A stretch of DNA of 64,000 bases from Macrostomum lignano (GCA_002269645.1 NIVC01000525.1:518395-582394), one strand, 5' to 3'; numbered from the stretch's first letter, positions 5,421 to 48,480 are shown. Numbers and translations: made by a program. Notes: a model not told the origin generated them from the sequence alone.

Positions 5421-8400
5421 AGGGCACTCCAATTTTTGCTTACTTCTATCATAACTAATACCTTTACCCTCTACCTTTAACTTTTTTAACATATACAAAA
5501 AACATGTCAGTTTTAGTATATTGAGATAGGTTTGAAACTATTATCCATGAAACAAAAATCAAATGTCTTGTGCTAGTAGTGCTACTAGCTTTAGTAGGTA
5601 GTAATACCTGCTGTAAAGGGAAGTGTTTTTTGTTTTACTTAGTCTAATTTCACCAACGAAATCTGTTTTCTCCGAGACTTGAAGCTATGTCATACCCCAC
5701 CCCAATCACAGCCAATAGGAAATGAGGAAATATATAGACCTATTCATATCCAAGCAGCCATTCAGAGCTGTGGCCATCTTGGTGTATGGCCATCTTGGTC
5801 ATGCGCCATATAAACCTATGAATTACTAACAGTCATGACTGCCATTTCTCTATCCTTATTATCCCTATTAACAATGGTTATACTTAACATTTATTTTATT
5901 TTATTCTTAGTTGATCTAGAAAGCCTAGACCTTTATTGCTATATTTGTGCAGGGCCCTTCTCGATTCTTTTATAAAATTGATAATCATATAACTCATTTT
6001 GAATGCGTGCCAAATCTAGGAAAACACATTGTTATAATACACATATTTTTCATAATATTTTACACGAACTAATTTTTGTTTAAACTAGCAGTAAATTTTA
6101 GTATAAATAGAAGCATTTTTGACAGAGGAGAGAGCAACCTCGTGCACCGCGGTTTGATAATAAGACAGTTAATAGCAAATAGTAAGAGTTCCGAGTAAAT
6201 GTTATTGAAGATTGTTTTCCAAGTTATTCATTTGCAGAAGAGAAGTGAAGTAGCAGAGAACACATATAGTATATACTACTGAGAAGTAGAAATAGTAAGA
6301 GAATACAAAGTAGATCCTAAATCAATATATATAAAAATAACCAGAGGCTATGACCCTCTGATCTTGGTAACACCTAGGATTAGAAGTACATGCAATACAT
6401 ATACCAGTAAGCCAATATACCGCTCAGGCCAGAATAACAGTAAACGCTACTAGAAAAATAGCAAACGCAACGCTATGGGAATAACAAGATAATGATACTT
6501 GTAAGAGTTAAATAGTATTCTAAGAACAATATACTCAATAAAATTTCTACAAAAGAAAAACCTACTATTAACAGAAATAGGCAATGATGTAGTCCTATTA
6601 ATATTCTATTCTAGGCAATTCTAAGCAATAGAATAAAAGGTGGCTTTGGTTCTGAGAAAACTGTATGCTTGTATATACCATATCACTCAGTTCAAGCCGC
6701 TCAACTATATATATCCAAAATTAATTTATATATGCCGTCGGAGGATATGATGTTGAGGATCTGTTGTTCACATAACTGCCTATATGCCTATGCAAGAACG
6801 CATTCGAAGAAAGCGTAGGTTAATTAGGTATTAAACCTTTTTTAAATTTACAATTTAACTCTTATTTTGACCAATTAAACAAACGAACTTCTTTTAAATT
6901 ACAATTTAGTGTAGACACAACCCATGTAACCCTTTTTTATTGAAATTACTAACAAAATTGAGTCTAGATTACCAGATTAAATTACTAAATTGCCAAAATT
7001 ACCAGAAATGGGACTTTTTTCACAACAAATCCATCTGAAATTGAAACGAACAGAAATAATTGGCAAAACATCTTGATCGAATGCATCAGAGAATTCTGAA
7101 ATGTAAACAGCAGTAAAAACAACAAAAATGTGATAACTACACCATTCTGTGGCTCTGTGCACTCATGCATGATGCGCCGTCTAGATATATTGGATCGAGC
7201 TGTGCGCGATTGATCAGAGCTTATAAATTTGATCGGCCCTTGATGAAATCATAGCCATCGCATCTTGCGACGTGAAATATTCTTAACTACAACAACAAAA
7301 ACAAAATACTTTTACTGCCAGCCACTCAGTCGCCAGAAAGGGGGAGAAGTCAGAGAGCACGTTGTTGGGACATATAGAGCTCCTAAAATTAATTTATTTG
7401 CACCTTGGTGTAAGTAAATGCCACTACCTCCAAGTAGTCAGGGCATGAGCCGCGCTTAACTGCTGCGGCGGCCCAACAGCCGCAGGACCAAGCGGGGGCA
7501 GCGGAGCGAGCGTCGGCGTGTTGAGCGTCGGCGTGAGCAAAATCGGCGCGGTCGGCAACGTGGTGCTGCTCGTCGAGCTGCTGCCGCTCTTGCCCATAAG
7601 GATCCTCTGGGTGGCGCCAGGGATCGAGAGGCTCATTTACATCGAGCCCCAGCCGTACGACAGGGCACGCTTCGGGTCGGGACCCTGAACTGCCGCACTC
7701 TCAAGGCCGCCTGGCGGAGAGGGGCTCTGGCAAAGCTAGCGCTCGACCTAAGCAGTGACGTCATCACACTGCAGGAGGTGTCTATCAAGACTGACCAGGG
7801 CTTCACTTTGAGGATCTGGGCGCCGGATGGACCCTCTATTACACATCGGCGGACCAACGAGGCCGTGGAGGAGTTGGAGCGCTGGTTGGACCGAGGCTGC
7901 AGCAGAGCTGTCGCTGCGTCTCTCTGTCTCCTCGGCTGCTCCGGGTCGACGTTTGGCTTCGCGGCCGGAACGCTCGCCTGTTCTGCGCATACGCGCCTCC
8001 TGCCACCCGACCTGACGAGGCTCAAGAATTCTTTGAGCAGCTCTCGGTACAGCTGGAGGCAACGGCGCAGCGCGACACAGTGATAATCCTCGGAGACCTG
8101 AACGCGGTTTTGCGTAGGTCCGAGCGGTCACTTTTCATCACACCGCGTGAGAACGGAAACACCGGAGAGCTGGAGGACTTCCTAGAGAGGCAGGACATGG
8201 TGTCGGCCAACACCCGCTTCCGCAAGCCGCTGGGCAGGCTCGCAACTTTTGTGGGCTGCAAGCGCAGGCGGAGGAACGCGCGTGGCCGGAACGCAACACG
8301 GAGGCAGGCACAGATCGATCATGTGCTGGTGTGCTTCCGCGAGCGCCGCCGCGTCGTCAATTGCCACGCCATCACACCGCTGGCTCTGCGTTCCGATTGT

Positions 8401-8659
8401 CGTATCGCGTGACTCAGCGGGTGTACATTGAGTACAATCGCTGTTTTATTTTATTGATTGACTGACAATGCTTCATTGAGCGTGACTAGTGTGTGCGTTA
8501 TTTGAAAACCCCTTGTGCTTTTATGCATCAATTATTCTTACGTTCGCTTGTACCAAAAATATAAAAGTCGTCTAGTGAGCTTAGAGCTCAATACTTTTTG
8601 ATTTCTCGCACTAACCACTATAGAGCTGTTTTAGTGGCGACGAGGATTGTGGCTGAGCA

Positions 8660-9552: not shown

Positions 9553-10541
9553 GTGACCTCTGTCTTCATCGAGGAGAAGCGATTCGAGATGGAGGTAGAC
9601 ACGGGGGCATCCGTATCGCTGATGTCCGAACGTACATTCAAGGAAAACCTGGGAAGCCGATGTCTCTGTCTGCGTCAACGGTTCAGCTTAGTACGTACAC
9701 CGGTCAAACCGTCCGTGTTCTCGGTCAGCTCTTCGTACGCGTGCGAGCTTCGCAAGGTTCGGCCGAGGAACAGCTGCCGCTGCTTGGTTGTCGCCGGTTG
9801 TGGTCCGAGCCTCCTTGGTCGAGACTGGCTAGACCGCCTGCGGCTGGACTGGCAATCTATCAAGCGGATGGAAGAAGCTGATGCAGCCAAGGAGTTGCTA
9901 CAGGAGTTCTCAGAAGTCTTCCAAGGTCTGGGCGAGTTCAGCGGCAAGCCGGTGTCCATCAGTCTGAAGGAGAACGCCAGACCAAGGTTCTGAAGGGGGG
10001 GGGGCGGTACCGTTTGCGCTGCGCGAGAAGGTTGAGCAGCAGCTGCAGAAGGAAATCGACCAAGGAATCCTGGTGCCGGTCAAAAATTCCAACTGGGCGT
10101 CCCCGATCGTGCCGGTAATGAAGTCCGACGGCAGCGTGCGCATCTGCGCTGATTTCAAGCAGTCGGTCAACGCAGCTATCCGGCCTGAGGCTTACCCGCT
10201 GCCGAACATCGACGAGCTGTTTTCACGCTTGGCTGGCGGTAAGAAGTTCTCAAAACTGGATCTGAGCTAAGCATTTTCGCAGCTTCCCCTGGATGAGGAT
10301 GCTCAAGAGCTCTGTACCAACAACACCTCGCTGGGACTTCTTCGCTACACCCGTCTGCCTTTCGGCGTGTCGATCGCCCCCAGCGTGTTTCAGCGGGTGA
10401 TGGACAGCTTACTGCAAGGAATTCCGCACTCTGCATCCTTCATCGATGATGTCATCATCACAGGCGAAGACGACGCCAGTCACCTCCGCAACCTGAGAGC
10501 AGTTCTGAAGGTCTTCAAGGAGTCCGGGCTGACCTGCAAGC
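9553..10541 (+). pseudogene. Gypsy pol fragment (aspartic protease and RT N-terminal half)
   Basis: MEVDTGASVS protease motif; WASPIVPVMKSDGSVRICADF, YPLPNIDELF, LPFG, SFIDDVII RT motifs; frameshifts and stops. Confidence 0.9.
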
Positions 10542-11932
10542 TCGCTGTTTTATTTTATCGATTGACTGACAATGCTTCATTGAGCGTGATTAGTGTGTGC
10601 GTTCTTTTAAAACCCTCTTGCTTTTATGCATCAATTATTCTTACGTTCGCTTGTACCAAAAATATAAAAGTCGTCTAGTGAGCTTAGAGCTCAATACTTT
10701 TTGATTTCTCGCACTAACCACTATAGAGCTGTTTTACCGATCATCGACTCGTCGTCTGCGACCTTCGTCTTCGCGATCTGCTCTACCGTCCGCCGAAGCG
10801 GCCACCGCGGCGCTATTACCGGGCGCTCAAGGATGCCAACACGCACAGCCGCTTTGCTAGCGCTTTCATCACTGCGCTCGACGGTAAGCGTGGAGGTGCC
10901 GAGTACGCGGAGGTGTGCGCTGCAGTTCGAGCCGCCGCGGAACAAGCAGTCCCGCTGATGCGACCGGCCCAGCGGGAGCAGCCGGAATGGCAAGACGACC
11001 GACCCCGCGATTCGGCTAGCGAGGGAAGAGCTAGAGACACTCCGTTTGAGCAGGCGACCAACACGCGAGGCAGAGGAGGCCTTGGCGGCTGATGCCAGAG
11101 GCCGCGTGGCCTGGTCGGCTATCAATGCTCTGACGGGGCGAAAGCGGCGCATTCCGCTAAACCTGGCAGGCGACTCCGAGGACGAGCGCAGAAATGAGCT
11201 GCGTGAGTTCTTCGCCGCCATTGTCAACGCGCTGCCACCCCTCTGCCAGACAGTCTGACGCTGCCGCCGGAGATGCCGTTGCCGGCAGAGGAGAGCTTCA
11301 GCCTAGCACCAGTCAGCCCAGCCGACGTTGTGAGGCTCGCCAACAGTCACTGGGCGGGAAAGCGCTGGGTCCGGAAGAGGTGCCCATCGAGGCGCTGCGC
11401 ATCCACTGTGGGGCCAGTGAGGTCGCCAGAGTGATAAATCGCGTGCTCTTCGGTGAGGAGGCACGCAACGAATGGACCATGGCGCACATCGTCGCAGTTC
11501 CCAAGAAGCCGGGCACCACGAGGCTTGAGGAGAATCGAGGTATCTGCCTTTAGTCCTGCGATGCGAAGTTGTTCAACCGGATGCTCGGATACGCCAGTCG
11601 ATCCTGATTGTTACCTTCATAGATTTTAAGAAGGCATTCGACTCGGTCGTCAGGTCTGTGCTCCCAAACGTACAACGTGTCAGAGCAGCTAATTTCCGCC
11701 ATCATGGCGATGTACTGTGATAGGAAAGCTTCTGTTTCAACACCGGAGGGCCTATCGGACTTCTTTGAGACATCCTCCGGGGTGATTCAGGGAGATCCGC
11801 TTGCGCCGTTCCTGTTTGTTCTGGTGCTTGACTGGGTGCTGCGGACTGCTCTTCTTACCAACGACGACGGCTTTCTGTTGCGGCGACGCGTGGGTCGACG
11901 TCAGCCGGAGAGGCGGCTCAGCGTGCTTGGCT

Positions 11933-11985
11933 CAAGGACAACTTAAGTAGATATACGAGCGTATATGTTACTTGAGTAGTCCTTG
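11933..11985. mobile_element. 53-bp hairpin MITE with 8-bp TSD
   Basis: CAAGGACAACTTAAGTA...TACTTGAGTAGTCCTTG (15/17 inverted match) between perfect direct repeats GCTTGGCT (11925-11932, 11986-11993); removal restores the LINE RT motif SVLGYADD. Confidence 0.88.
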
Positions 11986-12178
11986 GCTTGGCTACGCCGA
12001 CGACCTCGCCCTGCTGTCCTCAACTGTCGAGGGCGCCCAGCGACAACTGGACAAGCTAGTTGCTGTTGCAGTGAGTGTCGGCCTTGTGGTCAACACACAG
12101 AAGACCGTCGTGCTCTGCGTGCCGGACAACATCGAGGCAGCAATTTTGTGCCGAGGCTCTGATGGACAGGCGACAGAG

Positions 12179-12405
12179 TGTTGTATATTGACAGAGAACA
12201 CACTTGGCGCAAAGACACAGTATGCCCCGAGTCGATTGTTTTATTGTCTAGGGCAAAATCTATTATTTTATAATAAAGTAGTTACGACACGCATCCCAAG
12301 AGGAGTTAATCAAGCGGAGCAATACGAAAGCTCGAACCGCTTAAGTGAACTTTTGTCTTCCTTACTTAAATGTAGTAGCTCCAGGTCGGAGTAGAAGACG
12401 TAACA
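12179..12405. mobile_element. Solo LTR, 227 bp
   Basis: TGTT...AACA termini, 5-bp TSD CAGAG (12174-12178, 12406-12410), internal AATAAA; removal restores LINE sequence GQATELPRCQQF. Confidence 0.88.
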
Positions 12406-13019
12406 CAGAGCTTCCGCGTTGTCAGCAGTTCGTCGACCTCTGCTGTCTGGTTCCCGGCGTCCGCGAGGATTTGCGGCGTCGCCGCAGGCTTGCCTGGGCT
12501 GCCTGTGAGGGCAGTCCTGCAGTCTTACCTGACCGCCAGAGGGCGGCGATGTTCCAGGCGGTGATCGAGACTGTCCTGCTGTACAACGCCGAGACCTGGA
12601 CGCTGACGGAGTCGCTCGAGCAACAAGTTGACGCGGCGCACGCTGGCCTGCTGCGTGCCGCCTTCAAGATCGGCTACGAGCGAGTGACCAACGCGGCTTT
12701 GTATCTCCGCGCCGGCCTGGTCCGTCCAAGCGACCTGCTGCGCCGTCGGCGACTCCAGCTGGCCGGCCACATCATCCGCGCAAAGTCGTACTGCCCAGAG
12801 CCGGTGCAGGAGGTGCTGCTGCTAACCCTGCAGGCACCCTACCGGCGGGGGCAGGCGCGCACTCGGCGTTTCGTCGACTGCCTACTGGCTGACGCCGGCG
12901 CCTCGGATTCGGGCGGCGGCTTGGCGTTCATTGGCGACCTGGCCTTGAAGCGCGCCCTGTGACGCTAACCTGCGTATTCTGTTGTAGAGCCCTAAAAAAG
13001 TCCGTACCCCCCCCCCCCC

Positions 13020-13780
13020 AGCTTGGTCCGGGGCGCCCGCCAGCATCAGTCAAAAGCCGGTCAGGAAGTCTCGCCGTTCGCCCGTGGCCTCGCCTGCGCG
13101 GTCCCTGCAGCTTGAGCAGCAGCCTTCGTGTAGCGGCTCGGGGCCGGCCTCCGACCAGATGACGTGGCCAGCCAGTCGAAGTCGTCGACCGCGCAGCCCA
13201 GCCAGAACGCCGCATCAGGTGGGCCCTTGCGTAGAGCGCTGCATTTTATTAGTCTCGCTGCCTGGACCGCTGCGCACTCCGAACACCGCACGCAGCATGG
13301 CCGGATGCGCAGCATTCAAGCTGCTTCTCCAAGGCGTCCATGTCAGGGTCCAGGTCTCGATCGTTGTACAACAAGATAGTCTCAACGTCTACCTGAAACC
13401 CCTGAGCCCATCACCTGCCTCAGAATGGAGCACGGAGCGCACAGAACGAAACGCGGTCCAGGCCAGTCCTCGTCGTCTCACTAAGGTCGTCGGCAACGTC
13501 TGGCACGAGGCCGCCAAGGTACAGGAACCGCTGGCTAAGCATGATTGCATCCCCGGCGGCGTAATTGATCCCGGCAGGCAGGTCGGAGAGTGAAGACTAC
13601 CGTCTTCTGCGCGTTCTGGGAGGAGGAGCTAGGTGGCCCACTTCGATCGAAGAGGAGCGTGTACCACCAGCACTGGCAGAGAGGAAGAGCACTGGAGGCG
13701 ATCGAGGAGAAGGGGCAGCTTGAGGCCGACTCGCGATGCTCGCGATGTCAGGCCATCCAGCAGCCGCTAAGCGCCTTCAG
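13020..13780 (-). mobile_element. Divergent RTE-like LINE fragment (RT C-terminal region), different subfamily
   Basis: Minus strand gives QNAQKTVVF, VETILLYN, ETWTLT, AMLRAVFG and LLLKLQGPRRRGHGRTARLPDRLLTDAG, homologous to the C-terminus of the 872-aa ORF but much more diverged and frameshifted. Confidence 0.75.
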
Positions 13781-14430: not shown

Positions 14431-15092
14431 TCAAATATGCCGCACAAAATCGCAGCTATAATGATGCAGCACAAAGTCCAGCTGGTAGCGCACAGGCTCC
14501 AGCCCGGCTGCTGCATCGCACAGACCTTCGTCCAGCGACGACTGTCCGCCGTCCTCCGACATCCGCCGCAGCACCGGCCGCAGTCTGGTTCGCTGAATGC
14601 ACCGGCCAGACCGGGCCAAGTTGATCAGTTCCGGGTCGTATCCGTATTTCCAATAAGATTCGTTTAGCGCCACGGGATCTGTGCACAGGCAGCGCTTGTG
14701 CACAATAAACGGTGGCTCCATTGTCACGCTGTCGTCGATCTCCGGCTCGCTAACAGTGGGACAGAGGCTGGTGCCCTCAATCTGATGATTGTCAAGCATC
14801 TGGCTAAACGAATGCGTGCCATCCAGGCTGCTGCACTTTATTGGCAAATCTGGCCAGTCCAGCGTGTTCAGGTTGGTTTTCCATGTCTTGCTGACGTTCA
14901 AGTAGGTTCGAATCCTATCAGCCAATTGGCTGGCGTTGGCTTTGCTGAAGCAGAGAACGATGCTGCTGTCCTGCGGCAGCTGCAGGCCTGACAGAGCCAA
15001 TGGCAGGGCCATGGCGGCAGACCAGCAGCAGCAGGAGAAGAAGACAGCAAGCAGGACAGTTGGGGCAAGCTGGCTGAGTTTAGTAGTGCCTC
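14431..15092 (-). CDS. IL-17-like secreted cystine-knot protein, exon 2
   Basis: Acceptor TTCCTCCCACACACCACAG|GA at 15092, in phase with exon 1; hydrophobic signal peptide LAPTVLLAVFFSCCCWSAAMA; C-terminal SLCP...EPPFIVHKRCLC...C...PVLRR...C...YQLDFVLHHYSCDFV resembles the IL-17 family pattern; stop 14431-14433. Confidence 0.72.
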
Positions 15093-15132
15093 CTGTGGTG
15101 TGTGGGAGGAAAGTGCGTTCCGTCAGCAAACC

Positions 15133-15530
15133 AGGGGCGTCCCAAATCTGCAGTTGCTACGGACGCCAAAACCTATAGTTACTATAGGGATGCACAAATC
15201 TGCAGTTGCTAGGGACGCCAAAATATACAGTTACTATAGGGGCGCCCAAATCTGCAGTTGCTATAGGGTCGCCATAGTTACTATAGGGGTGCCCAAATCT
15301 GCAGTTGATTGGGCCCAAATCTGCCGTTTCTAGGGGTGCCCAAATCTGCAGTTGCTAGGGACGCCATAGTTACTATAGGGGTGCCCAAATCTGCAGTTGA
15401 TTGGGCCCAAATCTGCCGTTTCTAGGGGTGCCCAAATCTGCAGTTGCTAGGGACGCCCAAATCTGCAGTTGCTAGGGACGCCCAAATCTGCAGTTGCTAG
15501 GGGCGCCTAAATCTGCAGTTGCTAGGAGCG
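15133..15530. repeat. Compound tandem repeat (CCCAAATCTGCAGTTGCTAGGGACG core) filling the IL-17-like intron
   Basis: More than ten imperfect copies of the CCCAAATCTGCAGTTG core with interspersed ATAGTTACTATAGG blocks. Confidence 0.9.
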
Positions 15531-15585
15531 GCAAAATTTATTTTTAAAAAATTAACAAAACTCAACCGATATGCTCTTTGCTCAC

Positions 15586-15595
15586 CTGTTTTCAT
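15586..15595 (-). CDS. IL-17-like gene, coding exon 1 (ATG AAA ACA G)
   Basis: ATGAAAACAG|GTGAG donor; phase 1 joins exon 2 to give a continuous 223-aa ORF (672 nt including stop). Confidence 0.62.
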
Positions 15596-16581
15596 ATTGA
15601 CCGATTCGTGCAGTTCGAATAGGGAGTTATTCCAAGAAGTAATTATCCGTTAGTGTAGACGACCGGACTAATTAGTGAAGGATATTGAGTTTCACTAAGC
15701 CAGCACCTGCCCTCAATATATAGTCATTTTCAAGAGTAATTAACCACGCGTTATAATTCCATTCGTGAGTCAACTTTCGTTTTTTTCATTGGACTTTGCA
15801 ACGAGAATTAGTTAGAGCTAATTTTAAAGCAAAGTAAGACAGCTTCTAAATTTAGTTGCTGGGTTTGGAAATGCCCAAGGTATCAGTGGACTCTGGACAA
15901 TGAGCAACCCTATATAACCCTTTATCATCTGATACGCTTGGATCAGTTCGGTTGGATGATGAAATAAAAGGCTGGTGATAAATTGCTAACGAGAGAGTCT
16001 TGCCTTAAAACAGTGACTAATTCCGACTTTTTTGCAAAGAAAGATAAACAAATAAAAAAATGATACGAACTGACTATTTAAGCTACCTGGTTTTTTAGAT
16101 GCAATCTGTGAGCCTAAAATTTATATTATTAGATAAAGACTGCACGTGCTGCTTCACGGTGCAGGTCAGAATGATGCTACGCGTGTGGTCCCCCCCCCGG
16201 CCCCTAGCCGATATTCCATTTGCTGTGTCCAGATGCCATGATGTTGTACGCCCACACGGGTTTAAAAAGTCGCTATACGGGTGGTCCTCTTAACATGCGT
16301 GCGTAGCGCCTTTAACATAGCGACAAAAAATACTTGAAAACATTGCATAGCTGCACATGTGTTGAGCTGTATGTTGCTAATCTAAATTTATCAATTAATT
16401 TAGCTCGAACAAAAGTATAGAGGCTCCGGGCGGATGTGCTGTTCAGCTCCAGAGCCTGAGTCGGTGCGCACTAGATGCACGACCGGGTTACATCATTGCC
16501 ACTTTGAGGCTATTATATGTCATGTATAGTAAAATCGCCTAGGCGAATCTAATAACCCCCCCCATTATCGACGTAGTACAA

Positions 16582-16772: not shown

Positions 16773-18493
16773 AGAAAACAAAAGACAATTGAAGTTTTAT
16801 GATGGGTTTCGGCCTTTTCGGCTCCTTTGGGGAAGCCTTCGGGCCTCAGATCTGTTTTGTCTGTTTGGCAAAGCCACTCTCTCGTTCCCTGAAGTTCCGC
16901 TTTTGTCTATGTCCTATCTCTCTGCAGGCATTCTAGAGCATAGAATACCGCTCCCTTTTTTTGTTTCCCCCAAACATCGAGGGGACGTTCGCTAAACTAA
17001 AGAACGCCAAGCAGTTCGCCAGCATTGACCTGCGATCAGCTTATTGGCAGATTGAGTTAGATGAGGCGGCTCGTGATCTGTCCGTGATAAATACCTCACG
17101 TGGTCTGTACAGGGTGAATCGATTGCAAATGGGTATGAAGAACGCCTCTTTCATTTTTCAGCCCAAAATGGAGGCCATTCTATCCGACTTGAAAGGGCTG
17201 CTGATTTACCAAGATGACATTCTTGTATTCGCTGATAACCATGACTCCTTGCAGAAGCGTCTAATGGCAGTCAAGAAACGTCTGGAGGAGAAGCTCGTTA
17301 CCATCAACGAGGCTAAGTGCATTGACTACTGTGACGAGATTTCTTTCCTTGGCTTCAAGATCTCCGCTGCTGGCATTCAACCTGATAATCGCCTCGTTGA
17401 AAAGGTTCGCCAAATCGCTACGCCCGTAAACAAGCAAGAGGTATCGCAGTTTCTGGGTGTCGTCAACTTTTTCGGCCGACTAATCCCAGATTGCACCGCT
17501 AAAACACGCGCGTTAAACAACCTTCGTAAGGCTAGCACGGCGTTTGTCTGGGATTCCAGTTGCTCTGAGAAATTTGAAAATCTGAAGCCTGAGATAAGCT
17601 CCGCTCCTGTTATAAGGCCGTACAGTTTAGAGAAACCTGTCACCTTGACTACCGATGCCTCCAAAGGTGCCGTGGCTGGCGTACTCACGCAGGAAGGAGA
17701 AACCTGTCACCTTAACTACGCTCTCTCTCTCTGTCTGTCTCTCTCTCTCTCTCGACAGCCAGCACGATCGCAGCATCTAGCAATGAGCCCACGGCAAGCA
17801 CGAGCACGGAGACCAACGCCGACTCGGTAGTGGACGGCGGCGCGACGACCATCGGGGACGTGGCAGCGAGCGCCGATGCGACGATCAGCAACGACCCCTC
17901 AGCGGCTGCGGTTGCGGCTTCGGACGGCAATCCGGCGGCAGGCGGGACCACCGAAGTCGCCTCACCTGAGAACGGCTGCACGTCGGCAGCTGACGACCTC
18001 TTTGTGACCCCGCCTCTTCCACGGGTGGGACTGCCTGCTTCACCTGCCAAACGCCGCTTACCATCGCCGGACTCTGAAGACTCCCCTGGTGGTCCGGAAC
18101 GCCACAGGCCGCATCTGAATGACTCACCCAGCACCTTTGAGCAACCTGTTTCGCTCATCATCAGCAGGGACTGCCGGAACCTGGTACTCTGCCCAAAGAC
18201 TTTCGAGGGCCTCAAACTGCCGGCAATCACAGAGGTACATGAGTACTCACTGTCAGCCTTACCATCTCTACTGTGGTCGGCTGCCCTGCGGAACCGGCAA
18301 TGCGCTCGGTCAACGGTGCTGGTCCTGCCGGACGAGCTGTTTAGCACAGACCACTGGCGAGAGTCGCTCTCTGAGGCTATCGATCTACTGAGAGCGGACA
18401 GTCTGGCACGTAAGATTCTTCTGGTTCCGCCCTTTGCCAGCGGTGAAGAATTGACTCAAATTCTGAGTAAGAAACTCTCACCTGTTACTCTTA

Positions 18494-20813
18494 TTGCCTC
18501 TCCTCCTCTTAAACCAATTGTATCCTTCTCAGCGCCTGACTTTATTCTGGCGCTGCAGCTTCCTGGCTGAGAACTTTAAACTAGCTGACTACTGTAGGCC
18601 TCCCAAACTGGAAGGCAACATTTTAAATCTACACCCCACCTTCAAACTCTCCGAGTCTGAGACGAGGCTGCTAGATAGGGGACTCAATTTTATCCCAACC
18701 CAAGCCCTTGATTTCGATGATCTGAGGAACTGCATGACGGAATTTCATCGTAAACTTTTCTGGAAAGACTTTTTCAAAAAGAGGGGTCTCGCCAATAGCA
18801 GCCCGCCCCCCTTCACCGGGAAATCAGGGAAGGAGGTTCCCCTCAGACTTAGAAGGGATGAGTGCAACCTATTGGTACTTGAGAACCAAAAACTGGTAGA
18901 GAATTTGACAACGGTACAGATCAAAGGCAACCTAGAGGCACCAGAGACCAGGGCGATTCAGAGGCTCAAGCGAAACAGCTCCGTCCTTATAAAAAAGGCG
19001 GACAAAGGCAACGCAGTGGTCATCATGCACCCTAAGGACTACGAATTTGCAGCCTACAACCAACTGTTTGACACTGATGTCTATCAACAGCTGGACCAGC
19101 CATTGCAACCCGAGACTGCGGAACTTATTAGGGGGATCTTCCTAAATTTATGTAACAGAAAGTTCATATCTAAGAAAAAGTGTGCATTTCTTTGTCCCGG
19201 AGAGAACTTCCGTCCCCGGCATTTCTACCTGCTCCCAAAAATTCACAAGGACCCGGCCACCTGGCTGATCCCCTTTCGGGTCCCAGCAGGCAGACCTATT
19301 GTTAGCGGATGCAGTTCTGAAGCAATTGGGGCAGAAAAGTACATAGACTTCTTTCTAAAACCGATTGCCCAAGCGCAACCCACTTTCATTAAGGACTCCT
19401 ATGACTTCAAGGCACACCTTATGGATAAAAGCTGCACGGAAGGTTCGACTCTGGCAACTTGTGATGTCCAGAGTCTGTACTCCATGATCCCAATAGATCA
19501 GGGCATTGCAGCGATCCAGGAATTCTTTAACCGATACCCAGATCCCGTTAGACCGGATGCTGAGTTAATAAAGCTACTGGAATTGTGTTTTGTACAGGAA
19601 TGACTTTGAATTTGACAAAATGATTTTCCTACAACTTAGAGGCACAGCCATGGGGCGCATATTTGCGCCCAGCTATGCCTGTCTCTTCATGAGCCTCTGG
19701 GAGGAAACTGCCCTGAGAACTGCTCTTTATAAGCCGAACATCTATTTTAGGTACATAGATGATATCTTCATTCACTGGGATCACCCGGCTGAAGCTCTGA
19801 CAGAATTTGTTGTACACCTAAATTCAATCAACCCCAACATCAAACTCACCGTCAGCTCCTCATCAACTGAGGTCAGTTTCCTTGACATGACCATCAGGAA
19901 AGCTGAAAACCGCTTCACAACACAACTGTTTTCAAAAGAAACAGACACCCATAGATTGTTGCACCGACAGTCCTTCCATCCGTCACACACCTTCAAGGGG
20001 GTAGTAAAATCCCAAATCCTTCGGTACGCTCGTATCTGTGATGACTACAAGTCTTTCAACGATGCTTTCAATTCTTTAAAATCGGAACTTAAGCAATTAG
20101 GCTACTCGAAGATTTTTCTTAAAAACTGCAAAAAGGATGTCCTCATACTTATGAACTGGACTGCGGGACCAACGACCAATCTGGGTCTGCTTCCCAAAGG
20201 GTTCCATCCCTGTGGGTCATCCCGCTGCAAATGCTGCACCCACTCACCGCCTGCTCTCTCCGCCCAGGGACTGAAACCGGCTTCTGGTTTTTTAATCTCT
20301 CAGAGCCTGTCCTGTGGCTCCAAGAGCATCATCTATGGCATCTCCTGCAACCAGTGCCACCCTGGGAAAATCTTCTATGTAGGGATGACTAGAAGAACAA
20401 TGAGAGATAGAATGAACCAGCACAGGTCAAATATTAACAGGAAAGTCGTTACTTCGGGGTCAGAGCACTTTCTCACCCCCAATCACTCGATTGCAAACTT
20501 TGTCTCCATTGCTATCGAACAAGTTCTTAATAACAACAAAATCGAACTAAGGGAAGAAATCTGGATTAAAAAACTAGGGACTGACAAACCGCCAGGTACG
20601 AACATCAGGGTCGACAATCATCTTCTCCGACCCATCCCAATGGTCCTTCCTTTTCACCCATCTACGGTCTGGCTTGCCAACGAGATTGCTAAAAACTTTG
20701 ATAAGCTACAAAATAAACCAGGCTCCCGCATAATGCCCGCATTTCCACGGCAACGTAACTTACAGAGCCTCCTGGCTCCCAATAAGTTCAAGTCTCAGCC
20801 AGGAAACATTTAA
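18494..20813 (+). CDS. Penelope-like RT plus GIY-YIG endonuclease, one frameshift at about 19590
   Basis: Two overlapping ORFs join into a continuous RT-EN if one T is removed from the run in TGTTTTGTAC. Confidence 0.88.
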
Positions 20814-21375: not shown

Positions 21376-22466
21376 ACTCCGACCTCCGGCCGCCCACAGG
21401 TGGCCGGGTCGGGGCCGCTCTGCCGCCTGGATCGTCGATAGGCGGTTCCTGGCGGCCATCATCAGCCGCTACTTCGCCTCCTTGGTGGCAAGGTGCCCAT
21501 GCACACCTCGGCTAGAATTGGTCGCTGGGCGCTTGCACTTATGCAGTTTGACTTCGAAATTCAATATGTTATTGGTCCTCAAATTCCCCATACCGACGCA
21601 CTATCCCGCCTGCGTTTCACTAAAGCGTCGCCCGATCTCAAAGGAAATTTCTGATACGATCCACTGTGTGGTATTCGAAACATCAACCATTGACTCTACG
21701 CGTATACTGGCAGAGATGGATTTTGACCCTCTTGTTCACAAGATAATTCAGCGCGGTGCGCTCTGGAGACTGGTCGAAGTGCTCTCAGGCGGAATCCCCA
21801 TTAAAAAAAGTCGCTGATCGCCTTACCATGGAAACCGTCCTGCTATTCAAGCAGAGACACATCTTTATTCCGCCTCGCCTACGTTTCAAGGCCTAACAAC
21901 ATTATACACGACACTCACTTGGGCGCGCAGGTCTCTTACAATCTACTAGCCTCATCGTGTTGGATTGGTGGCCTGGGATGCGGCTTGATTCCTTTCCAGC
22001 GGATCCACATATAGATCGGGTGTATGTAAAGGACATTGGAAATATCCTAATTGTAGTCTATACGTTTTCAGGATGGATAGATCGAGCGTTTCCGTCGCGT
22101 GACAGATCAGGAGATAGTGTTGTTCGGTCTCTGATTACCGTATTTTCTCGATTTGGTGTACCTTAACTACTCTTGTCGGACAACGCACTGGGTTTACTGG
22201 TGATCCCTTATCCTCATTCCTACGCTCCAAAGGCGTTCGGAAATTGGAGTCTCCTACTTACTACCCTCAGGCGAATGGATCGGCGGAGCGAGCAGTTCGT
22301 ACTGTCAGGACAGCGTTGAGGGCATGGACCGAGCGCGTCACCCACTTGGAGTTTCTCCGCTTTTTTCAGGAAATACTTTTCCACCATCGCAATTTGTCAA
22401 TGTCGCGAGGTAAATGCCCGGCGGAATTGGTCTTTGGCAGACGATTGCGCGTGCCCGTGGTCTCAA

Positions 22467-22982
22467 CTACATATCGTGCAGTTGGAGCTGGGTTTTCAGA
22501 TGTTTTGACGCAAAAAACGCAAATTATACTACTATCTGAAAATGAAGTAAGTAGTATATAAAAACGCTATCCTAAGTGTGATATGTTTAAATATTCATAT
22601 GTACATTAATCCATATACATTAATCCATGTACTCACAATGCACATTAATCCCCAAATTGTATCTGTACATGTATATCCCAATTCTATATGTACACAGTAC
22701 ATACTTCTGCATTAATTAATCTACATGTACAGCGTCATCCCCAGACGGTCCGCGCGCACCAAGATTACATGTACAACTCGAAACCCTACTACATGTACAG
22801 TTGCACGCAGAGGTGAGAATTACTGTACTATCTCATCTACAAATAGTTTCGTCAGGACGCGCTGAAACGTCTTGTCTATATTGATCGTGTGTATGGTACA
22901 AGACGCCTTGTCGCGCCTGAACTGAAACGCGTGTACGGGGCCTGCAGCAGGCCTTATGGCTATAAGCCTTATGGATATGTAG
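22467..22982. mobile_element. 516-bp insertion with 9-bp TIR and degenerate 8-bp TSD inside Gypsy integrase
   Basis: CTACATATC...GATATGTAG; flanks GGTCTCAA / TGTCTCAC (6/8); removal restores VPVVSTFVQGE. Confidence 0.6.
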
Positions 22983-31606: not shown

Positions 31607-34600
31607 CAACAACAACAAAATACGCTGTCATGATGGTAAAAGTCAGCGTCACAGGGCGCGCTTCATGGCTTGGGCGCGAACAAAGGCCGCGCCACCGGCA
31701 GTGTCCGGGGCGCCGGCGTCAGCCAGCAGACAGTCGACATAACGCCGAGTTCGCGCTTGACCTCGCCGGTAGGGTGCCTGCAGCGTGAGCAGCAGCACCT
31801 CCTGCACCGGCTGTGGGCAGTACGACTCGGCGCGGATGAGATGGCCTGCGAGCTGGAGTCGCCGACGGCGCAGTAGATCACTTGGACGTGGCAGGCCAGC
31901 GCGGCGATAGAGTGCCGCGTTGGTGACTCGCTCGACGCCGATGTTGAAGGCGGCGCGCAGCAGACCAGCGTGCGCCGCATCGACTTGCTGTTCGAGTGAG
32001 TCCGTCAGCGTCCAGGTCTCGGCGTTGTACAGCAGGACGGTCTCGATTACCGCCTGGAACAGCGCCGCCCTCTGGCGGTCCGGTAGGGCCTCGGACTGCA
32101 GGACTGCCCTCACAGAACGAAAGGCAGCCCAGGCAAGCCCGCGGCGGCGTCGCAGGTCCTCGCGAGCGTCTGGAACCAGACCGCCGAGGTAGACGAACTG
32201 CTGACATCGCGGGAGTTCGGTCGCCTGCCCGTCAGCGCCTCGGCAAAATATTGCAGCCTCGATGTCGTCCGGCACGCAGAGCACAACGGTCTTCTGCGTG
32301 TTGACCACCAGGCCGACACTCGCCGCAACGGCAACCAGCCTGTCCAGCTGCCGTTGGGCGCCCTCGACGGTCGAGGACAGCAGGGCGAGGTCGTCGGCGT
32401 AGCCAAGCACGCTGAGCCGCTTCTCCGGTTGACGTCGACCCACGCGTCGCTGCAGCAGAAAACCGTCGTCGTCGGTAGGAAGAGCAGTCCGCAGCACCCA
32501 GTCAAGCACCAGGACGAACAGGAACGGCGCCAGCGTATCTCCCTGAAGCACTCCGGAGGATGTCTCAAAGGAGTCCGATAGGCCGTCCGGTGTTGTCACA
32601 GCAGCTGTCGTATCACGGTACATCGCCATGATGGCGGAGATCAGCTGCTCAGGCACGTTGTACGCGCGGAGCACCATTGGAAGCACGGCTCTGACAACCG
32701 AGTCGAATGCCTTCTTGAAATCAATAAAGATTAAAATCAGGATCGACTGACGAATCCGCGCCTCCTCGATGACTCGGCGAAGAGCCAGGATCTGCGCCAC
32801 TGTGCCGCGATGGGGCCGAAACCCGTTCTGCTCTGGGCGCAGGTACGGATCCAGCACGGGCTGCAACCGCGAAAGCAGCATCCGGTTGAACAGCTTCGCT
32901 GCACAGGACTGAAGGCAGATGCCTCGATGGTCTCTGGCGACCTCAGCTTCCACACAGGGGATGCGCAGCGCCTCGATGGACACCTCGTCCGGACCCAGCG
33001 CTTTCCCGCCCGGTGACTGCTGGGCGAGCTTGACAACGTCGGCTGCGTTGACTGGGGCTACGCTGAAACTCTCCTCTGCCGGCAGCGGCGTCTCCGGCGG
33101 CAGCGTCAGACTGTCTGGCAGCGGGGGTGGCGGCGCGTTGACGATGGCGGCGAAGAACTCGCGCAGCTCGTTCCTACGCTCGTCCGGCGTGTCACCAGCC
33201 AGGTTCAGCGGATTGCGCCGCTTTCGTCCCGTCAGAGCGTTGATGGCGGACCAGGCCACGCGCCCTCTGGCATCGGGCCCAGCGGCAGAGACAGCCTGAA
33301 TGGCGTCATCGACAGCCGCTTGTTGGCGCTGCAGGTAGACAGCTGCCAGAGCTGCCTCTGCCTCGCGGGTTGGTCGCCTGCTCAAGCGGAGCTTCTCCAG
33401 ATCTTCCCTCGCTGCCTGAATCGCAGGGTCGTCCTGCCAGACCGGCTGCCCACGTTGAGCCGGTTGCATCATCGGGACTGCTTGCTCCGCGGCGGTTCTG
33501 ACTGCAGCGCACACTATCGCATACTCGGCACTTCCACGCTTGTCGCCCAGCGCGGTGTTAAAGGCGCTAGCAAAGCGACGCTGCGTATCGGTGGCTCTGA
33601 GCGCGCGGTAGTAGCGCCGCGGTGGCCGCTTCGGCGGACGGTAGAGCGGATCGCGAAGGTTGAGGTCGCAGATGAGGAGCCGGTGATCGGACCGCAGAGC
33701 CAGCGGCGTGATGGTTCGGCAGTTGACGGCGCGACGACGCTCACGGAAACGCACGAGCACGTGGTCGAGCTGTGCTTGTCTCCGGGTTGCGTTCCTGCCA
33801 CGCGCGTTCCGTCGCCTCCGCTTGCAGCCCACGAAGGTTGCGAGACCGCTTAGTGGCTTGCGGAAGCGGGTGTTGGCCGACACCATGTCCTGCCTCTCCA
33901 GGAAGTCCTCCAGTGCCTCGGTGTTGTTGTTCCCGCGTGGCGTCACGAACAGCGACCTCTCGGACCTACGCAGGACTGCGTTCAGGTCTCCGAGGGCGAC
34001 CGCTGTGTCACGCTGCGCCGTCGCCTCTACCTGCACTGAGAGCTGCTCGAAAAACTCTTGAGCCTCGTCAGGGCGTGTGGCAGGGGGCGCGTACGCGCAG
34101 AACAGGCGAGCATTCCGACCGCGTAGCCGGACGTCGATCCGAAGCAACCGAGGGGACAGGGAGACGCAGCGACAGCTCTGCTGCAGCCTCGGCCCGATCA
34201 GCGCTCCAACTCCTCCACGGCCTCGCTGGTCCGCAGAAGTATAGTAGAGGGTCCACCCGGCGCCCAAGTCCTCACAGTCCCGGGTCGGCCTTGATAGACA
34301 CCTCCTGCAGCGAGATGATGTCGCAGCTCAGGTCGTACGCCAGCTTCGCCAGCACCCCTCTACGCCAAGCAGCCTTGAGAGTGCGGCAGTTCAGCGTCCC
34401 GACCCGAAGCATGCCCTGTGGTACGGCTGGGGCTCGATGCAGTTGAGCCTCACGGTCCCCGGCGCCACCCGGAGGATCCGAGTGGACCCGCGCGGCAGCT
34501 CGACGGGCGGCGCCACGCAGCCGGCCTCGTCGGTTCCGCTCACGCCGGCGCTCAACACGCCGACGGGCGCTCCGCTGCCCTCGCTTGGTCCTGCCGCATT

Positions 34601-38864: not shown

Positions 38865-38924
38865 GTTAGTGGGACGGCAGTCGCTTTTCTAGCTAGGGGA
38901 CCGCCTTAAAAATTGTCTCTGTGA

Positions 38925-39722
38925 GAATCTCCCTATAGCCACTGTGAGAATCGCCCCATGAGCCACTGTGAGAATCGCCCTTTAACCACTGTGAGAATCG
39001 CCCCATGAGCCACAGTGAGAATGGCCCCATGAGCCACAGAGAGAATGGCCCCATGAGCCACAGTGAGAATCGCCCCATGAGCCACGGTGAGAATCGCCCC
39101 ATGAGCCACGGTGAGAATCGCCCTATGAGCCACAGTGAGAATCGCCCCATGAGCCACTGTGAGAATCGCCCCATGAGCCACTGTGAGAATCGCCCTTTAA
39201 CCACAGTGAGAATCGCCCCATGAGCCACTGTGAGAATGGCCCCATGAACCACTGTGAGAATGGCCCCATGAGCCACTGTGAGAATGGCCCCATGAACCAC
39301 TGTGAGAATGGCCCCATGAACCACTGTGAGAATGGCCCCATGAGCCACTGTGAGAATGGCCCCATGAGCCACTGTGAGAATGGCCCCATGAACCACTGTG
39401 AGAATGGCCCCATGAACCACTGTGAGAATGGCCCCATGAACCACTGTGAGAATGGCCCCATGAGCCACTGTGAGAATGGCCCCATGAGCCACTGTGAGAA
39501 TGGCCCCATGAACCACTGTGAGAATGGCCCCATGAACCACTGTGAGAATGGCCCCATGAGCCACTGTGAGAATGGCCCCATGAGCCACTGTGAGAATGGC
39601 CCCATGAACCACTGTGAGAATGGCCCCATGAACCACTGTGAGAATGGCCCCATGAACCACTGTGAGAATGGCCCCATGAGCCACTGTGAGAATCGCCCTT
39701 TAACCACAGTGAGAATCGCCCC
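38925..39722. repeat. 24-bp minisatellite in ZC3H15 intron 3
   Basis: GAGCCACTGTGAGAATGGCCCCAT, more than 30 copies. Confidence 0.95.
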
Positions 39723-39811
39723 TAATACGCACAATTTCGCATGTAAACTACTGTCAGTAGTTTACTAGTTAGCACGCAGATAATTAGCAAGAAATTCCAA
39801 CCCTTCCACAG

Positions 39812-40045: not shown

Positions 40046-40804
40046 CGTGTCAGTTTAGCCAGCTGATGCTGATGATGGCGCTGATGTTTGGCTGTTTGCT
40101 GGCTAATATTATTATGAATGATTGAAATAAATGATTGATATCTGATAGAGTCTGCTTCCTTCTCTTCCCGATTCAGCTCCATGCTTTTGCGCCCTCATGT
40201 GTGTTCCTCTGCTCTTCTGCTTTTCAGGGTTCTCCCTCTCTCTCGTGTTTATTTAGTGCACAAAATTGTTTTACTGGCATCATATTACTGTAAGTAGGAT
40301 TGGGGAGTTTTTTTCAATCAAATTAGAAAAGACATGGGCTTTATTACAATTCCTAAAGCCAGGCTTTCATCATATAGTATATCTGAAATCCCAGTAACTT
40401 ACGTATGTAATCCTGACGTGAGTTGCTGTCCTATCTTTGATGAAGCTCGGTTAACACGTGTTCGTCGCTGTTTTGGTTTATTCCCTTTAAAATTCTACTC
40501 ACTTCTCTGCTGCGTCGCCTGAATTGCTCACCGAGTCTTTACTGAAATTACTGCTATTAAATTAATGTGTTGCACCTGTCCATGAACTATTTTCGATTGC
40601 GTGTAATATGCTACTTACTCATATCCTCTCGCTTTGACGCCATAGTGCATGGCTGCCAATATTTTGAGAGAAGAGAATCAATAACATGCCGGCAAAACTA
40701 ACTGACCAGCAGAGGACTGAATTTTTATTGAGACAATTCTTGTGTCTTGCTTATTTGTGGCGCACTGTAAGACCAGACACACACTGAGGTATTGGAGGAC
40801 AGCC

Positions 40805-41585
40805 ACACACTGAAGTACCGGACGGTAACCAGCCTGAAGTATCGGACGGTAACCAGCCTGAAGTATCGGATGGCAAGCACACTGAAGTATCAGAAGGCAA
40901 GCACACTGAAGTATCGGATGGTCACCAGCCTGAAATATCGGACGGTAACTAGCCTGAAGTATCGGACGGTAACTAGCCTGAAGTATCGGACAGTAACCAG
41001 CCTGAAGCATCGGACGGTAACCAGCCTGAAGTATCGGATCGTAACCAGCCTGAAGTATCTGACGGTAACCAGCCAGAAGTATCGGATGGTAACCAGCCTG
41101 AAGTATCGGACGGTAACCAGCCTGAAGTATCGGATGGTCACCAGCCTGAAGTATCGGACGGTAACCAGCCTGAAATATCGGACGGTAACTAGCCTGAAAT
41201 ATCGGACGGTAACCAGCCTGAAGTATCGGATGGTAACCAGCCTGAAGCATCGGACGGTAACCAGCCTGAAGTATCGGATCGTAACCAGCCTGAAGTATCT
41301 GACGGTAACCAGCCTGAAGTATCGGATGGTAACCAGCCTGAAGCATCGGACGGTAACCAGCCTGAAGTATCGAACGGTAACCAGCCTGAAGTATCGGATG
41401 GAAAGCACATTGAAGTATCAGAAGGCAAGCACACTGAAGTATCAGAAGGCAAGCACACTGAAGTTTCAGAATGCAAGCACACTGAAGTATCGGAGGGGAG
41501 CCACCCTGAAGTATCGGAGGGGAGCCACCCTGAAGTATCAGAAGGCAAACACACTGAAGTATCGGAGGGGAGCCACCCTGAATAC
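40805..41585. repeat. 24-bp minisatellite, intergenic
   Basis: CCTGAAGTATCGGACGGTAACCAG, about 32 copies with variant blocks. Confidence 0.95.
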
Positions 41586-42255
41586 AATATTAGAACTAAG
41601 TTTCAATGCTGGATGCAATCTTGGCTATGAAAGTGCGGCTATAACGGCCTGTCAATCATAAAGCACAGAAGCGCACTAAAATTGATCGATTTGCGCAGGA
41701 AGCTGGAAGAAAGGATTTGCCATACTTGTGATGAAAACAGCTGGCATAATTATCGACTTAGCTATATGGCTGCAGATGAGTCATCAGTTGCAGCAACATG
41801 GCACTACTTGAACAGCAGCAGGACCAGAGCTTAAAAACGCACACAGGCTGGTCTGTAGCTCCCCCCGCGCCCGTCCAGGTTCCTCCGCGGACGTCGTCAG
41901 CCTGCAGGCACTGGGCCGCGGTATCCTGCTGTTACCTCTATAGACCGGCCTCTGTTGACGCCCCTAAATTGTGCCCACTCTGCCCATTTGTACACTTCAG
42001 CGCAACAACCCCTTTTCGGTCACGCTATACGCCTCTCTCTCTGCCAGCCATCCCCGATACCCCAGTTACTTCCATCATCGTCGGCTTGCCCCAACACAGT
42101 CAAATCCCCCGGTGAAGGCTGAACAAGACTGGGAGCGAGTCATCCTCTAACCTCCGCTAGTTTTTTCCCTTGTAGTTCCTGTCCCGGTAGACCAATTCAC
42201 CAGCTAATCCTTCATTCTTTCTATTGGAAATTTTTGCCAATATTGACTGCGCAAC

Positions 42256-42387
42256 ATGTCGGTACCGGAGTTCGGCCAGCAGCAGCAGACGACACGGGTT
42301 CGCCTGGTCCGGCCGGCCAAAGAGGCCGCCTGGGGCTTCCGGTTGGACCGAGGCTCCAGACACGCAGGCGGGTTCGCTGTGTCTCGG
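42256..42387 (+). CDS. PDZ-domain protein, exon 1
   Basis: CAACATG start; TTRVRLVRPAKEAAWGFRLDRG...FAVSR (PDZ carboxylate-binding loop WGF); donor |GTGAGG phase 0. Confidence 0.82.
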
Positions 42388-42479
42388 GTGAGGAAGCGAA
42401 ATTTATTTGCTTCTCTGAGGGTTTGGCTTGCTTCCAGATGAAATAGTTCTGATTGACGCTGTTCGATCTAGAGCTGATA

Positions 42480-43165
42480 TGGTGGAGCTTACTTCCGGAG
42501 CTGAGATAGTGGAGCTTACTTCCGGAGCTGAGATAGTGGAGATTACTTCCGGAGCTGAGATAGTGGAGCTTGCTTCCGGAGATGAAATGGTGGAGCTTAC
42601 TTCTAGAGCTGAGATAGTGGAGCTTACTTCCGGAGCTGAGATAGTGGAGCTTACTTCTAGAGCTGAGATAGTGGAGCTTACTTCCGGAGCTGAGATAGTA
42701 GAGCTTGCTTCCGGAGATGAAATGGTGGAGCTTACTTCCGGAGCTGCGACTTTGGGAGCTGACTTCTGAGCTGAGACTGTGGGAGCTTACTTCCAGAGCT
42801 GAGACTGTGGGAGCTTACTTCTGAGCTGAGACTGTGGGAGCTTACTTCCGGAGCTGAGACTGTGGGAGCTTACTTCTGAGCTGAGACTGTGGGAGCTTAC
42901 TTCCGGAGCTGCGACTTTGGGAGCTTACTTCTGAGCTGAGACTGTGGGAGCTTACTTCCGGAGCTGAGACTGTGGGAGCTTACTTCTGAGCTGAGACTGT
43001 GGGAGCTTACTTCCGGAGCTGAGACTTTGGGAGCTTACTTCTGAGCTGAGACTGTGGGAGCTTACTTCCGGAGCTGAGACTTTGGGAGCTTACTTCTGAG
43101 CTGAGACTGTGGGAGCTTACTTCCGGAGCTGAGACTGTGGGAGCTTACTTCCGGAGCTGCGATGG
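42480..43165. repeat. 27/28-bp minisatellite in PDZ gene intron 1
   Basis: GAGCTTACTTCCGGAGCTGAGATAGTG (27 bp), then alternating 28/27-bp variants. Confidence 0.93.
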
Positions 43166-45445: not shown

Positions 45446-45477
<32 letters not shown>

Positions 45478-48420: not shown

Positions 48421-48480
48421 GTGGCAATTAGAAGCTACAGAAAAGCTGAAACGCCATCCCGGATGTTCCTCATATTCCAG

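Follow-up and report, generated by a model that had tools for sequence, protein, structure and literature searches.

A 64-kb stretch (64,000 nucleotides; nt) of the genome of Macrostomum lignano (GCA_002269645.1; NIVC01000525.1:518395-582394), to which we refer here as the window, carries on its minus strand, at positions 14431 to 15595, a two-exon gene candidate whose predicted 223-amino-acid product may be an extremely divergent ligand of the IL-17 family, i.e., a new representative of a known kind of protein. We rate the chances of this assignment as almost even. The fuller proposal, to which we attach somewhat less than even chances, is that the candidate represents the first IL-17-superfamily ligand to be recognized in the Platyhelminthes, with a cystine knot of the T1C type, two enlarged loops and a C-terminal strand that can no longer be recognized, and that it has been missed by standard domain models. 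No IL-17 ligand from any flatworm was found to be described in the literature searched. The evidence connecting the candidate with IL-17 is suggestive and not decisive, and the resemblance is too faint to serve as proof; the locus itself is, in our view, probably a protein-coding gene, or was one until recently.

Similarity to Invertebrate IL-17 Proteins

Invertebrate IL-17 proteins possess cysteines at the positions of the two invariant serines of the chordate proteins, which gives rise to the CPW/SPW motif (PMC8353272; PMC4517768); a further hallmark of the family, motif 3 (..[SC]VP[IV]YQxILVLR[RK]), has VLR[RK] as its core (PMC4517768). A hidden Markov model (HMM) of the invertebrate IL-17 proteins was constructed from 42 published domains (S1 Dataset of PMC4517768), which were aligned and then profiled. 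It matches residues 109-183 of the candidate co-linearly with model positions 4-64, and the landmarks S-L-C-P, P..IV..RCLC, the fourth knot cysteine and PVLRR follow one another in the order that is found in the family. The mature protein scores 10.0 bits and the domain alone 11.6 bits (10-14 bits across runs), values that are attained by 1 of 5000 composition shuffles and by 2 of 5000 shuffles in which the cysteines were held fixed. In model-global Viterbi alignments, the candidate reaches +10.9 bits, shuffled sequences score -19.7 ± 5.2 bits, and the next best of 239 open reading frames (ORFs) in the window attains -1.4 bits; one of 4000 composition shuffles and none of 2000 cysteine-fixed shuffles equal the candidate. 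Since so few of the cysteine-fixed shuffles reach the local or the model-global score, residues other than cysteine contribute to it. The N-terminal two-thirds of the cysteine domain surpasses about 99.97% of the shuffles and every other ORF in the window, and the candidate ranks first in a blind six-frame scan of the 846 window ORFs of at least 40 amino acids. Profile-profile comparison with hhalign in local mode against the invertebrate profile yields a P-value of 0.0014 over 60 columns, at a probability of 17.5%. Taken as a whole, the profile similarity is weak and extends over residues 106-183.

The cysteine domain (residues 106-223; 14434..14787, minus strand, as for all features of the candidate gene given below) is delimited by these weak HMM, model-global and hhalign matches and contains six cysteines, C114, C138, C140, C168, C195 and C217. 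When the candidate was introduced into the family alignment with MAFFT (--add) and no hand-tuning, all six fell into cysteine columns of the family, and P143 was placed in the Cys3 column. C114 (14761..14763), embedded in S-L-C-P, corresponds to knot Cys1 and is placed where the invertebrate C-P-W motif has its cysteine (serine in the chordate S-P-W); each of the 42 family sequences has a cysteine in this column. The tryptophan of the motif is a threonine in the candidate. C138 and C140 (14683..14691) form a CLC motif and correspond to knot Cys2 and an accessory cysteine, with cysteine in 35/42 and 34/42 family sequences, respectively. In the family, Cys2 follows [IL]xEA[RK] and Cys5 is part of V-G-C. 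The motif surrounding Cys2 in IL-17 proteins is reduced to P-x-x-I-x-x-x-R-C (PPFIVHKRC); its DPNR and EA elements are absent. P143 (14674..14676) occupies the position of Cys3, a cysteine that 11 of the 42 family members likewise lack. C168 (14599..14601) corresponds to knot Cys4 (cysteine in 41/42 sequences) and precedes R179 by 11 residues, the very spacing found between the respective cysteine and arginine of Caenorhabditis elegans F25D1.3 and between Ser140 and Arg151 of human IL-17D. The segment C168-IQRTRLRPVLRR180 aligns without gaps with the C..vkVlrr block of the family, and V177-L-R-R180 (14563..14574) is the counterpart of the motif 3 core in both the HMM and the hhalign alignments. 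The candidate thus has cysteines both at the C-P-W motif and ahead of VLR[RK], the two positions that define the invertebrate type T1 and provide the third disulfide of its knot (both are serines in chordates). Further downstream, C195 (14518..14520) is an accessory cysteine behind VLRR (its column in the MAFFT alignment holds a cysteine in 29/42 sequences) and the likely partner of C140. C217 (14452..14454), the sole C-terminal cysteine, is taken as knot Cys5 and as the presumptive partner of C138, with F219 then residing at the Cys6 position. In the MAFFT alignment, C217 lies in the Cys6 column and Y215 in the Cys5 column, a register that is ambiguous by two residues; the HMM leaves the C-terminal segment unaligned, and it is uncertain by one strand position which of the C-terminal knot cysteines would have survived.

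Chen et al. (2024) classified IL-17 knots into type T1A with three disulfides, T1B in which Cys2/5 has been lost, T1C in which Cys3/6 has been lost, the vertebrate type T2 in which Cys1/4 has been lost, and type T3 without Cys5/6 (PMC11087794). The candidate displays Cys1, Cys2 with its accessory cysteine, no Cys3, Cys4, a second accessory cysteine and one C-terminal cysteine. If C217 is read as Cys5, this layout conforms to T1C, in which Cys3 and Cys6 are jointly absent and the Cys1/4 and Cys2/5 pairs are kept; the same layout occurs in C. elegans F25D1.3 and T22H6.1, Lottia 169526 and 159302, Branchiostoma floridae 117645, and others. An earlier, sequence-only reading of this locus had described the loss of both cysteines, and P143 and F219 are indeed found where IL-17 proteins usually carry Cys3 and Cys6. 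The coordinated loss of a disulfide that it highlighted is real, but it is the already published T1C type (PMC11087794), and no new disulfide architecture is involved. That the S-L-C-P and G-R-C motifs would restore the canonical Cys1-Cys4 bond escaped this reading because it drew its comparison exclusively with vertebrate IL-17 proteins. All of the motifs it listed are present in the product, namely SLCP, PPFIVHKRCLC (with C138 and C140), PVLRR (residues 176-180) and Y206...S216-C217; the last of these, given as Y.L..V....SC, lacks statistical support. The two insertions it reported are present as well, with about 14 residues in the Cys2-Cys4 loop, instead of the roughly 20 initially estimated, and about 12 residues after VLRR.

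Comparison with Known Ligands

The T1C ligands (F25D1.3, NP_505700.2; T22H6.1; Lottia gigantea 169526/159302; B. floridae 117645) resemble the candidate in being made as precursors with a signal peptide (a predicted one in the candidate) and a C-terminal cysteine domain, in having a cysteine at the CPW position and another one that precedes the RR of VLRR by 11 residues, and in possessing a CLC motif that is not followed by a cysteine three residues later, an accessory cysteine after VLRR, and one C-terminal cysteine instead of CxC. The closest sequence is that of F25D1.3 (28% identity over 85 aligned positions), and its layout (ALCPW..SVCLCRKS..AFCMPIVRKVPILRRVSCD..VGCHS) is the same as that of the candidate. 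The candidate differs from these ligands by a threonine in place of the tryptophan after C-P, by the absence of the R-x-P and E-A landmarks, by loops that are about 14 and 12 residues longer, by a C-terminal β-strand block that is unrecognizable, and by its failure to match the Pfam IL17 family. The vertebrate IL-17B/C/D/E proteins (T2; CLCxGC ... VLRR ... GCTC) have the succession of CLC and VLRR and the Cys2 column in common with it; they carry serines at Cys1/Cys4 and retain Cys3/Cys6, whereas the opposite holds true for the candidate. Its likeness to a vertebrate IL-17 profile is essentially nil (3.6 HMM bits; hhalign probability 1.2%), and we consider this profile too distant to serve as a test.

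Trunk, PTTH and the crustacean CFSH are cystine-knot, neurotrophin-like relatives of IL-17 (PMC11087794). They are made as secreted precursors of about 220 residues, in which the knot domain is C-terminal and the mature part contains eight cysteines. The candidate is similar to them with respect to precursor size, the C-terminal cysteine domain and the eight mature cysteines, and it differs from them in that no dibasic processing site is present ahead of the domain. None of the Trunk, PTTH, Spaetzle, NGF or other cystine-knot families of Pfam-A matches the candidate at E≤10, a result for which no dedicated sensitive profile test was made, and no sequence match to Trunk, PTTH or CFSH proteins emerged from an exhaustive search of 1.84 billion representative proteins. 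An identity as CFSH was dropped in view of the flatworm host and the lack of a sequence match, despite the similar size and the eight cysteines.

Gene Model and Predicted Precursor

As read from the sequence and translated by a program, the candidate gene consists of two exons that are separated by a 493-nt intron, and it has a 672-nt coding sequence (CDS) for 223 amino acids. The in-phase 10-nt first exon and the 223-residue precursor of the sequence-only reading were reproduced, with the splice junction as a prediction. A TATA-like element (CTATATATTG; 15714..15723) can be discerned in the sequence about 120 nt upstream of the start codon and may represent the core promoter; no ATG is present between this element and position 15595, and the ATG of exon 1 is the first one downstream of it. 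The coding part of exon 1 (ATGAAAACAG; 15586..15595) specifies M K T and the first base of the G4 codon and is followed by the donor GTGAGC, which agrees with the consensus at 8/9 positions and is the best donor of the 22 ATG..GT pairs that are in phase over the 2.4 kb upstream. It fits the cis-donor motif of M. lignano, GT[G/A]AG, of which GTGAG is the dominant form (PMC8629364). The predicted intron (15093..15585) terminates with a polypyrimidine tract and CAG (TTTCCTCCCACACACCACAG, ending at 15093), and exon 2 (662 nt; 14431..15092; GC content at third codon positions, GC3, 0.68) encodes residues 4-223, with a TGA stop codon at 14433-14431. Within the intron, a 25-nt tandem repeat (15133..15526; about 16 copies; consensus AGGGACGCCCAAATCTGCAGTTGCT) forms a minisatellite array that is organized into 47- and 92-nt higher-order units with 91-99% identity; this minisatellite does not occur elsewhere in the window.

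We regard this gene model as probable because of the ORF, the in-phase splice signals, the GC3 value, the drop in GC content at the ends of the CDS, the hydrophobic N-terminus and the presence of a single copy in the window, where neither paralogues nor repeats of the locus were detected. From stop to stop, the frame extends over 241 codons, and each of the other five frames contains 2-9 stops in the same stretch; it is the sole long ORF of the region outside repeats and transposons. GC contents at codon positions 1/2/3 are 0.55/0.46/0.68, and they fall to 0.31 and 0.37 directly outside the CDS, so that the composition changes sharply at both boundaries. The protein matches neither the transposon-derived proteins of M. 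lignano nor any other transposon protein. A single, weak polyadenylation-like signal (ATTAAA) is present at 13977. The candidate has a well-formed two-exon structure and is probably a gene of a Macrostomum-type flatworm that is restricted to this lineage and has escaped annotation.

The precursor begins with a segment resembling a signal peptide (residues 1-30, of which residues 4-30 are encoded by exon 2 at 15013..15092). Its hydrophobic core (LAPTVLLAVFFSCCCWSAA; residues 12-30) gives a Kyte-Doolittle peak of 2.7 in an 11-residue window, and A-x-A-like sites would permit cleavage after A30 or S38. The signal peptide named in the sequence-only reading is thus a plausible prediction from hydropathy that depends on the proposed exon 1. 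A putative pro-region or N-terminal region (residues 31-105; 14788..15012) follows, which contains C51, C90 and the sequons N56 and N69, two of the three N-x-S/T sequons of the precursor; it resembles nothing in Pfam (E≤10), in clustered proteins searched with phmmer, or in the PDB. Apart from the six cysteines of the domain and C51 and C90 upstream of it, the protein possesses cysteines at positions 24-26 within the signal-like segment. For comparison, mussel IL-17 proteins range from 126 to 221 amino acids (PMC8353272).

Weighing of the Evidence and Alternative Explanations

A considerable number of observations speak against membership of the candidate in the IL-17 family. Pfam-A, including IL17 (PF06083; gathering threshold 24 bits), contains no family that matches the whole protein, the domain or the pro-region at E≤10, while human IL-17D, the positive control, scores 98.9 bits with PF06083. 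No homologue was found among 5.8 billion clustered proteins (word-indexed phmmer; E≤10), nor was one accepted among the 1.84 billion representatives that were searched exhaustively with phmmer; the one match in the latter set, P0001, was rejected as spurious, since it is a translated tandem repeat in which PPFLVHRQCVC recurs five times. A phmmer search of the PDB returned DSL1 noise, and a scan of metagenome contigs uncovered no relatives. When accepted IL-17 proteins (from nematodes, echinoderms, annelids, molluscs, amphioxus, Daphnia and human) were scored with their own phylum left out of the profile, or as foreign sequences as in the case of the human protein, which was never part of it, they attained 41-84 bits, and the candidate attained 10-14 bits in the same runs; if it is an IL-17 protein, it would lie far outside the known range of the family. 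The best-conserved block of IL-17 proteins, motif 2 (YExxxEx[VI][APT]V[GA]CTC[VA]), cannot be recognized in residues 181-223, which score -0.7 bits, a value matched by 1338 of 5000 shuffles; the tryptophan of CPW, the arginine of R-x-P and the EA before Cys2 are all missing. In the model-global traceback, neither C195 nor C217 is assigned to a cysteine column, and we do not accept the model-global score as proof of full-length homology, as the C-terminal cysteines are unaligned and little is gained beyond the local match. Even the reversed sequence scores +3.7 bits in this mode and thereby exceeds nearly all shuffles, which implies that cysteine spacing alone contributes part of the score. The lead of the candidate in the blind scan is marginal (9.3 bits, E=0.066, versus 9.1 and 8.2 bits for short noise hits), the hhalign probabilities lie between 1 and 18% overall, and the IL-17 hypothesis was framed after the sequence had been inspected. 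Single-sequence AlphaFold2 predictions were unusable, with predicted local distance difference test (pLDDT) values of 37.5 for the full-length protein and 41.6 for the domain. The proposal of an IL-17/Trunk/PTTH-type ligand consequently stands with regard to the gene, the six-cysteine layout and the co-linear N-terminal two-thirds of the domain, and it falls short with regard to the C-terminal block, the range of scores, the Pfam check (PF06083) and the profile-profile check, which it had itself put forward and of which the latter returned the probabilities of 1.2% (vertebrate) and 17.5% (invertebrate; P=0.0014) given above.

Several of these observations would be expected of a genuine orphan protein of Macrostomum, secreted and rich in cysteine but unrelated to IL-17, which might evolve rapidly and serve in reproduction, adhesion or gland secretion. 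The CP, CLC and VLRR matches would then be coincidental in a sequence rich in cysteine, leucine and arginine. We consider this explanation possible, if doubtful. It accords with the lack of any homologue or Pfam family in the databases searched, with a score that is four- to eight-fold below that of any accepted IL-17 protein in the leave-out tests, with noise ORFs in the window that locally attain 8-9 bits, with the dissimilar C-terminal third and the score of the reversed sequence, and with the post hoc origin of the hypothesis. Coincidence accords less well with the rarity of cysteine-fixed shuffles that reach the score (2/5000 locally; 0/2000 model-globally), with 60 co-linear model columns in which four landmarks occur in order and the spacing from Cys4 to RR is exactly that of the family, with the placement of 6/6 cysteines on family cysteine columns, and with the position of the domain at the C-terminus of a precursor of about 220 residues with a predicted signal peptide, as in invertebrate IL-17 proteins. 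A more radical explanation holds that the locus is non-functional, either a chance or decaying ORF or a piece of an uncharacterized mobile element, and that the splice sites and the signal peptide are fortuitous. Its position among LINE, LTR and Penelope-like fragments and an intron full of minisatellite repeats would fit this explanation, as would the single weak polyadenylation-like signal; the exact product is absent from a gene-position index of public assemblies, the predicted proteins of genomes, metagenomes and Logan assemblies include nothing similar, and the UniProt proteome of M. lignano contains the neighboring LINE family and no counterpart of the candidate. We nevertheless deem it unlikely, given a frame of 241 codons in unique sequence, where the other frames contain 2-9 stops, a GC content that varies with codon position and shifts sharply at both ends of the CDS, a locus that is unrepeated in the window and unlike any transposon protein, and the best available donor, in phase, behind the first ATG past the TATA-like element.

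The ORF might also be real and possess a different 5' end. In this scenario, a spliced leader (SL) would be trans-spliced to the acceptor at 15092, and translation would begin at M31 (ATG 15012-15010) and yield a protein of 193 amino acids with a merely weak hydrophobic stretch at its N-terminus. In M. lignano, SL trans-splicing affects about 30% of the genes and takes place at [T/C]TNCAG acceptors (PMC8629364); the acceptor of the candidate reads CCACAG, and a coding first exon of 10 nt is unusual. The SL ends in ATG, though, and its joining to 15092 would set up a different frame that runs into a stop after about 66 codons; ahead of M31, the frame of the candidate continues without a stop through a segment of strong hydrophobicity, and an in-phase consensus cis donor is available 493 nt upstream. 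Trans-splicing is favored where an upstream cis donor is missing (PMC8629364). Provided that the gene is real, we judge this variant to be quite improbable. The frame of about 66 codons initiated by the SL ATG (14898-15092, minus strand; ORF 14898-15068) would overlap the start of the CDS. The SL sequence of M. lignano does not occur in the window, and the exact product of the ORF starting at M31 has no entry in the gene-position index; within the collection searched, the UniProt proteome of M. lignano holds no counterpart of the candidate.

Genomic Surroundings

The sequence-only reading had placed the candidate among transposons, and long terminal repeat (LTR), long interspersed nuclear element (LINE) and Penelope-like fragments do surround the locus. 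An apparently intact LINE ORF (31649-34267, minus strand; 872 amino acids) encodes an endonuclease and a reverse transcriptase (RT), and its named best matches are exclusively M. lignano proteins (60-89% identity). These matches assign the window to Macrostomum or a close relative and bear out the flatworm-like host assumed in the sequence-only reading. Related pieces are located at 7460-8409 (plus strand) and at about 10724-13590, and the second copy has the peptide DLGAGWTLYYTSADQRGRGGVGAL in common with it. In some of the M. lignano proteins matching this LINE, the annotation joins it to host domains (7TM receptor, VHS, HSP70, MUS81), a hint that the M. lignano proteome is contaminated with transposon sequences. 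Two adjoining ORFs of 378 and 413 codons are present at 18467-20810 (plus strand); the second is read as a Penelope-like retroelement because it combines a GIY-YIG nuclease domain with a weak RT match. Fragments of LTR retrotransposons lie on the plus strand at 16937-17827, 10271-10675 and 22118-22558. An ORF at 16961-17830, directly upstream of the candidate and on the opposite strand, contains RT and RNase H domains according to Pfam, and the pieces at 10271-10675 and 22118-22558 were assigned by eye as LTR-type RT and integrase-like, respectively.

Further long minisatellite arrays are found at 38896-39765, 40681-41658, 42224-42814, 48361-50971, 53341-53965, 54966-55946, 58041-58502, 60450-61481 and 61652-62579. 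They lack stop codons in several frames of either strand, which creates pseudo-ORFs of up to 743 codons, and they give rise to false gene calls and to spurious matches such as P0001. Within an otherwise repetitive ORF at 60447-61463 (minus strand), the sterile alpha motif family SAM_3 is matched weakly (E=7.7e-4) and below the Pfam cut-off. Non-repeat ORFs with a glutamine-rich stretch (MESFMESMQQYPGYSQQQQLQQQQQQQR) at 45187-47830 (plus strand) are possibly exons of a host gene, e.g., of a transcription factor. Rfam and tRNA scans of the window gave no matches.

Proposed Mode of Action and Significance

If the assignment of the candidate to the IL-17 family is correct, cis-splicing of the two exons would give rise to a precursor whose N-terminal signal peptide directs it into the secretory pathway and is then cleaved off. 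Its C-terminal domain would consist of two β-hairpins that are tied together by the Cys1-Cys4 (C114-C168) and Cys2-Cys5 (C138-C217) bonds, with an accessory C140-C195 bond in place of the lost Cys3-Cys6 bond; C51 and C90 may be linked to one another or take part in disulfides between chains. Going by the analogy to other IL-17 ligands, we would expect the secreted product to act, probably as a dimer, on a receptor that has FN3 ectodomains; no gene for a receptor combining such ectodomains with SEFIR is present in the window.

Should the similarity to IL-17 turn out to be coincidental, the locus would be one more lineage-specific secreted protein gene. Should it be genuine, the candidate would fill a gap in surveys of IL-17 evolution, which omit the Platyhelminthes or depend on sequences that are detectable with Pfam, and it would illustrate how far members of this family can drift while the scaffold of the Cys1/4 and Cys2/5 bonds is maintained. 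It would also mean that flatworms have kept an IL-17/Trunk-like signaling axis that is open to RNA interference in a regenerating model animal, and it would provide studies of wounding, infection and regeneration in Macrostomum with a candidate cytokine or neurotrophin-like signal.

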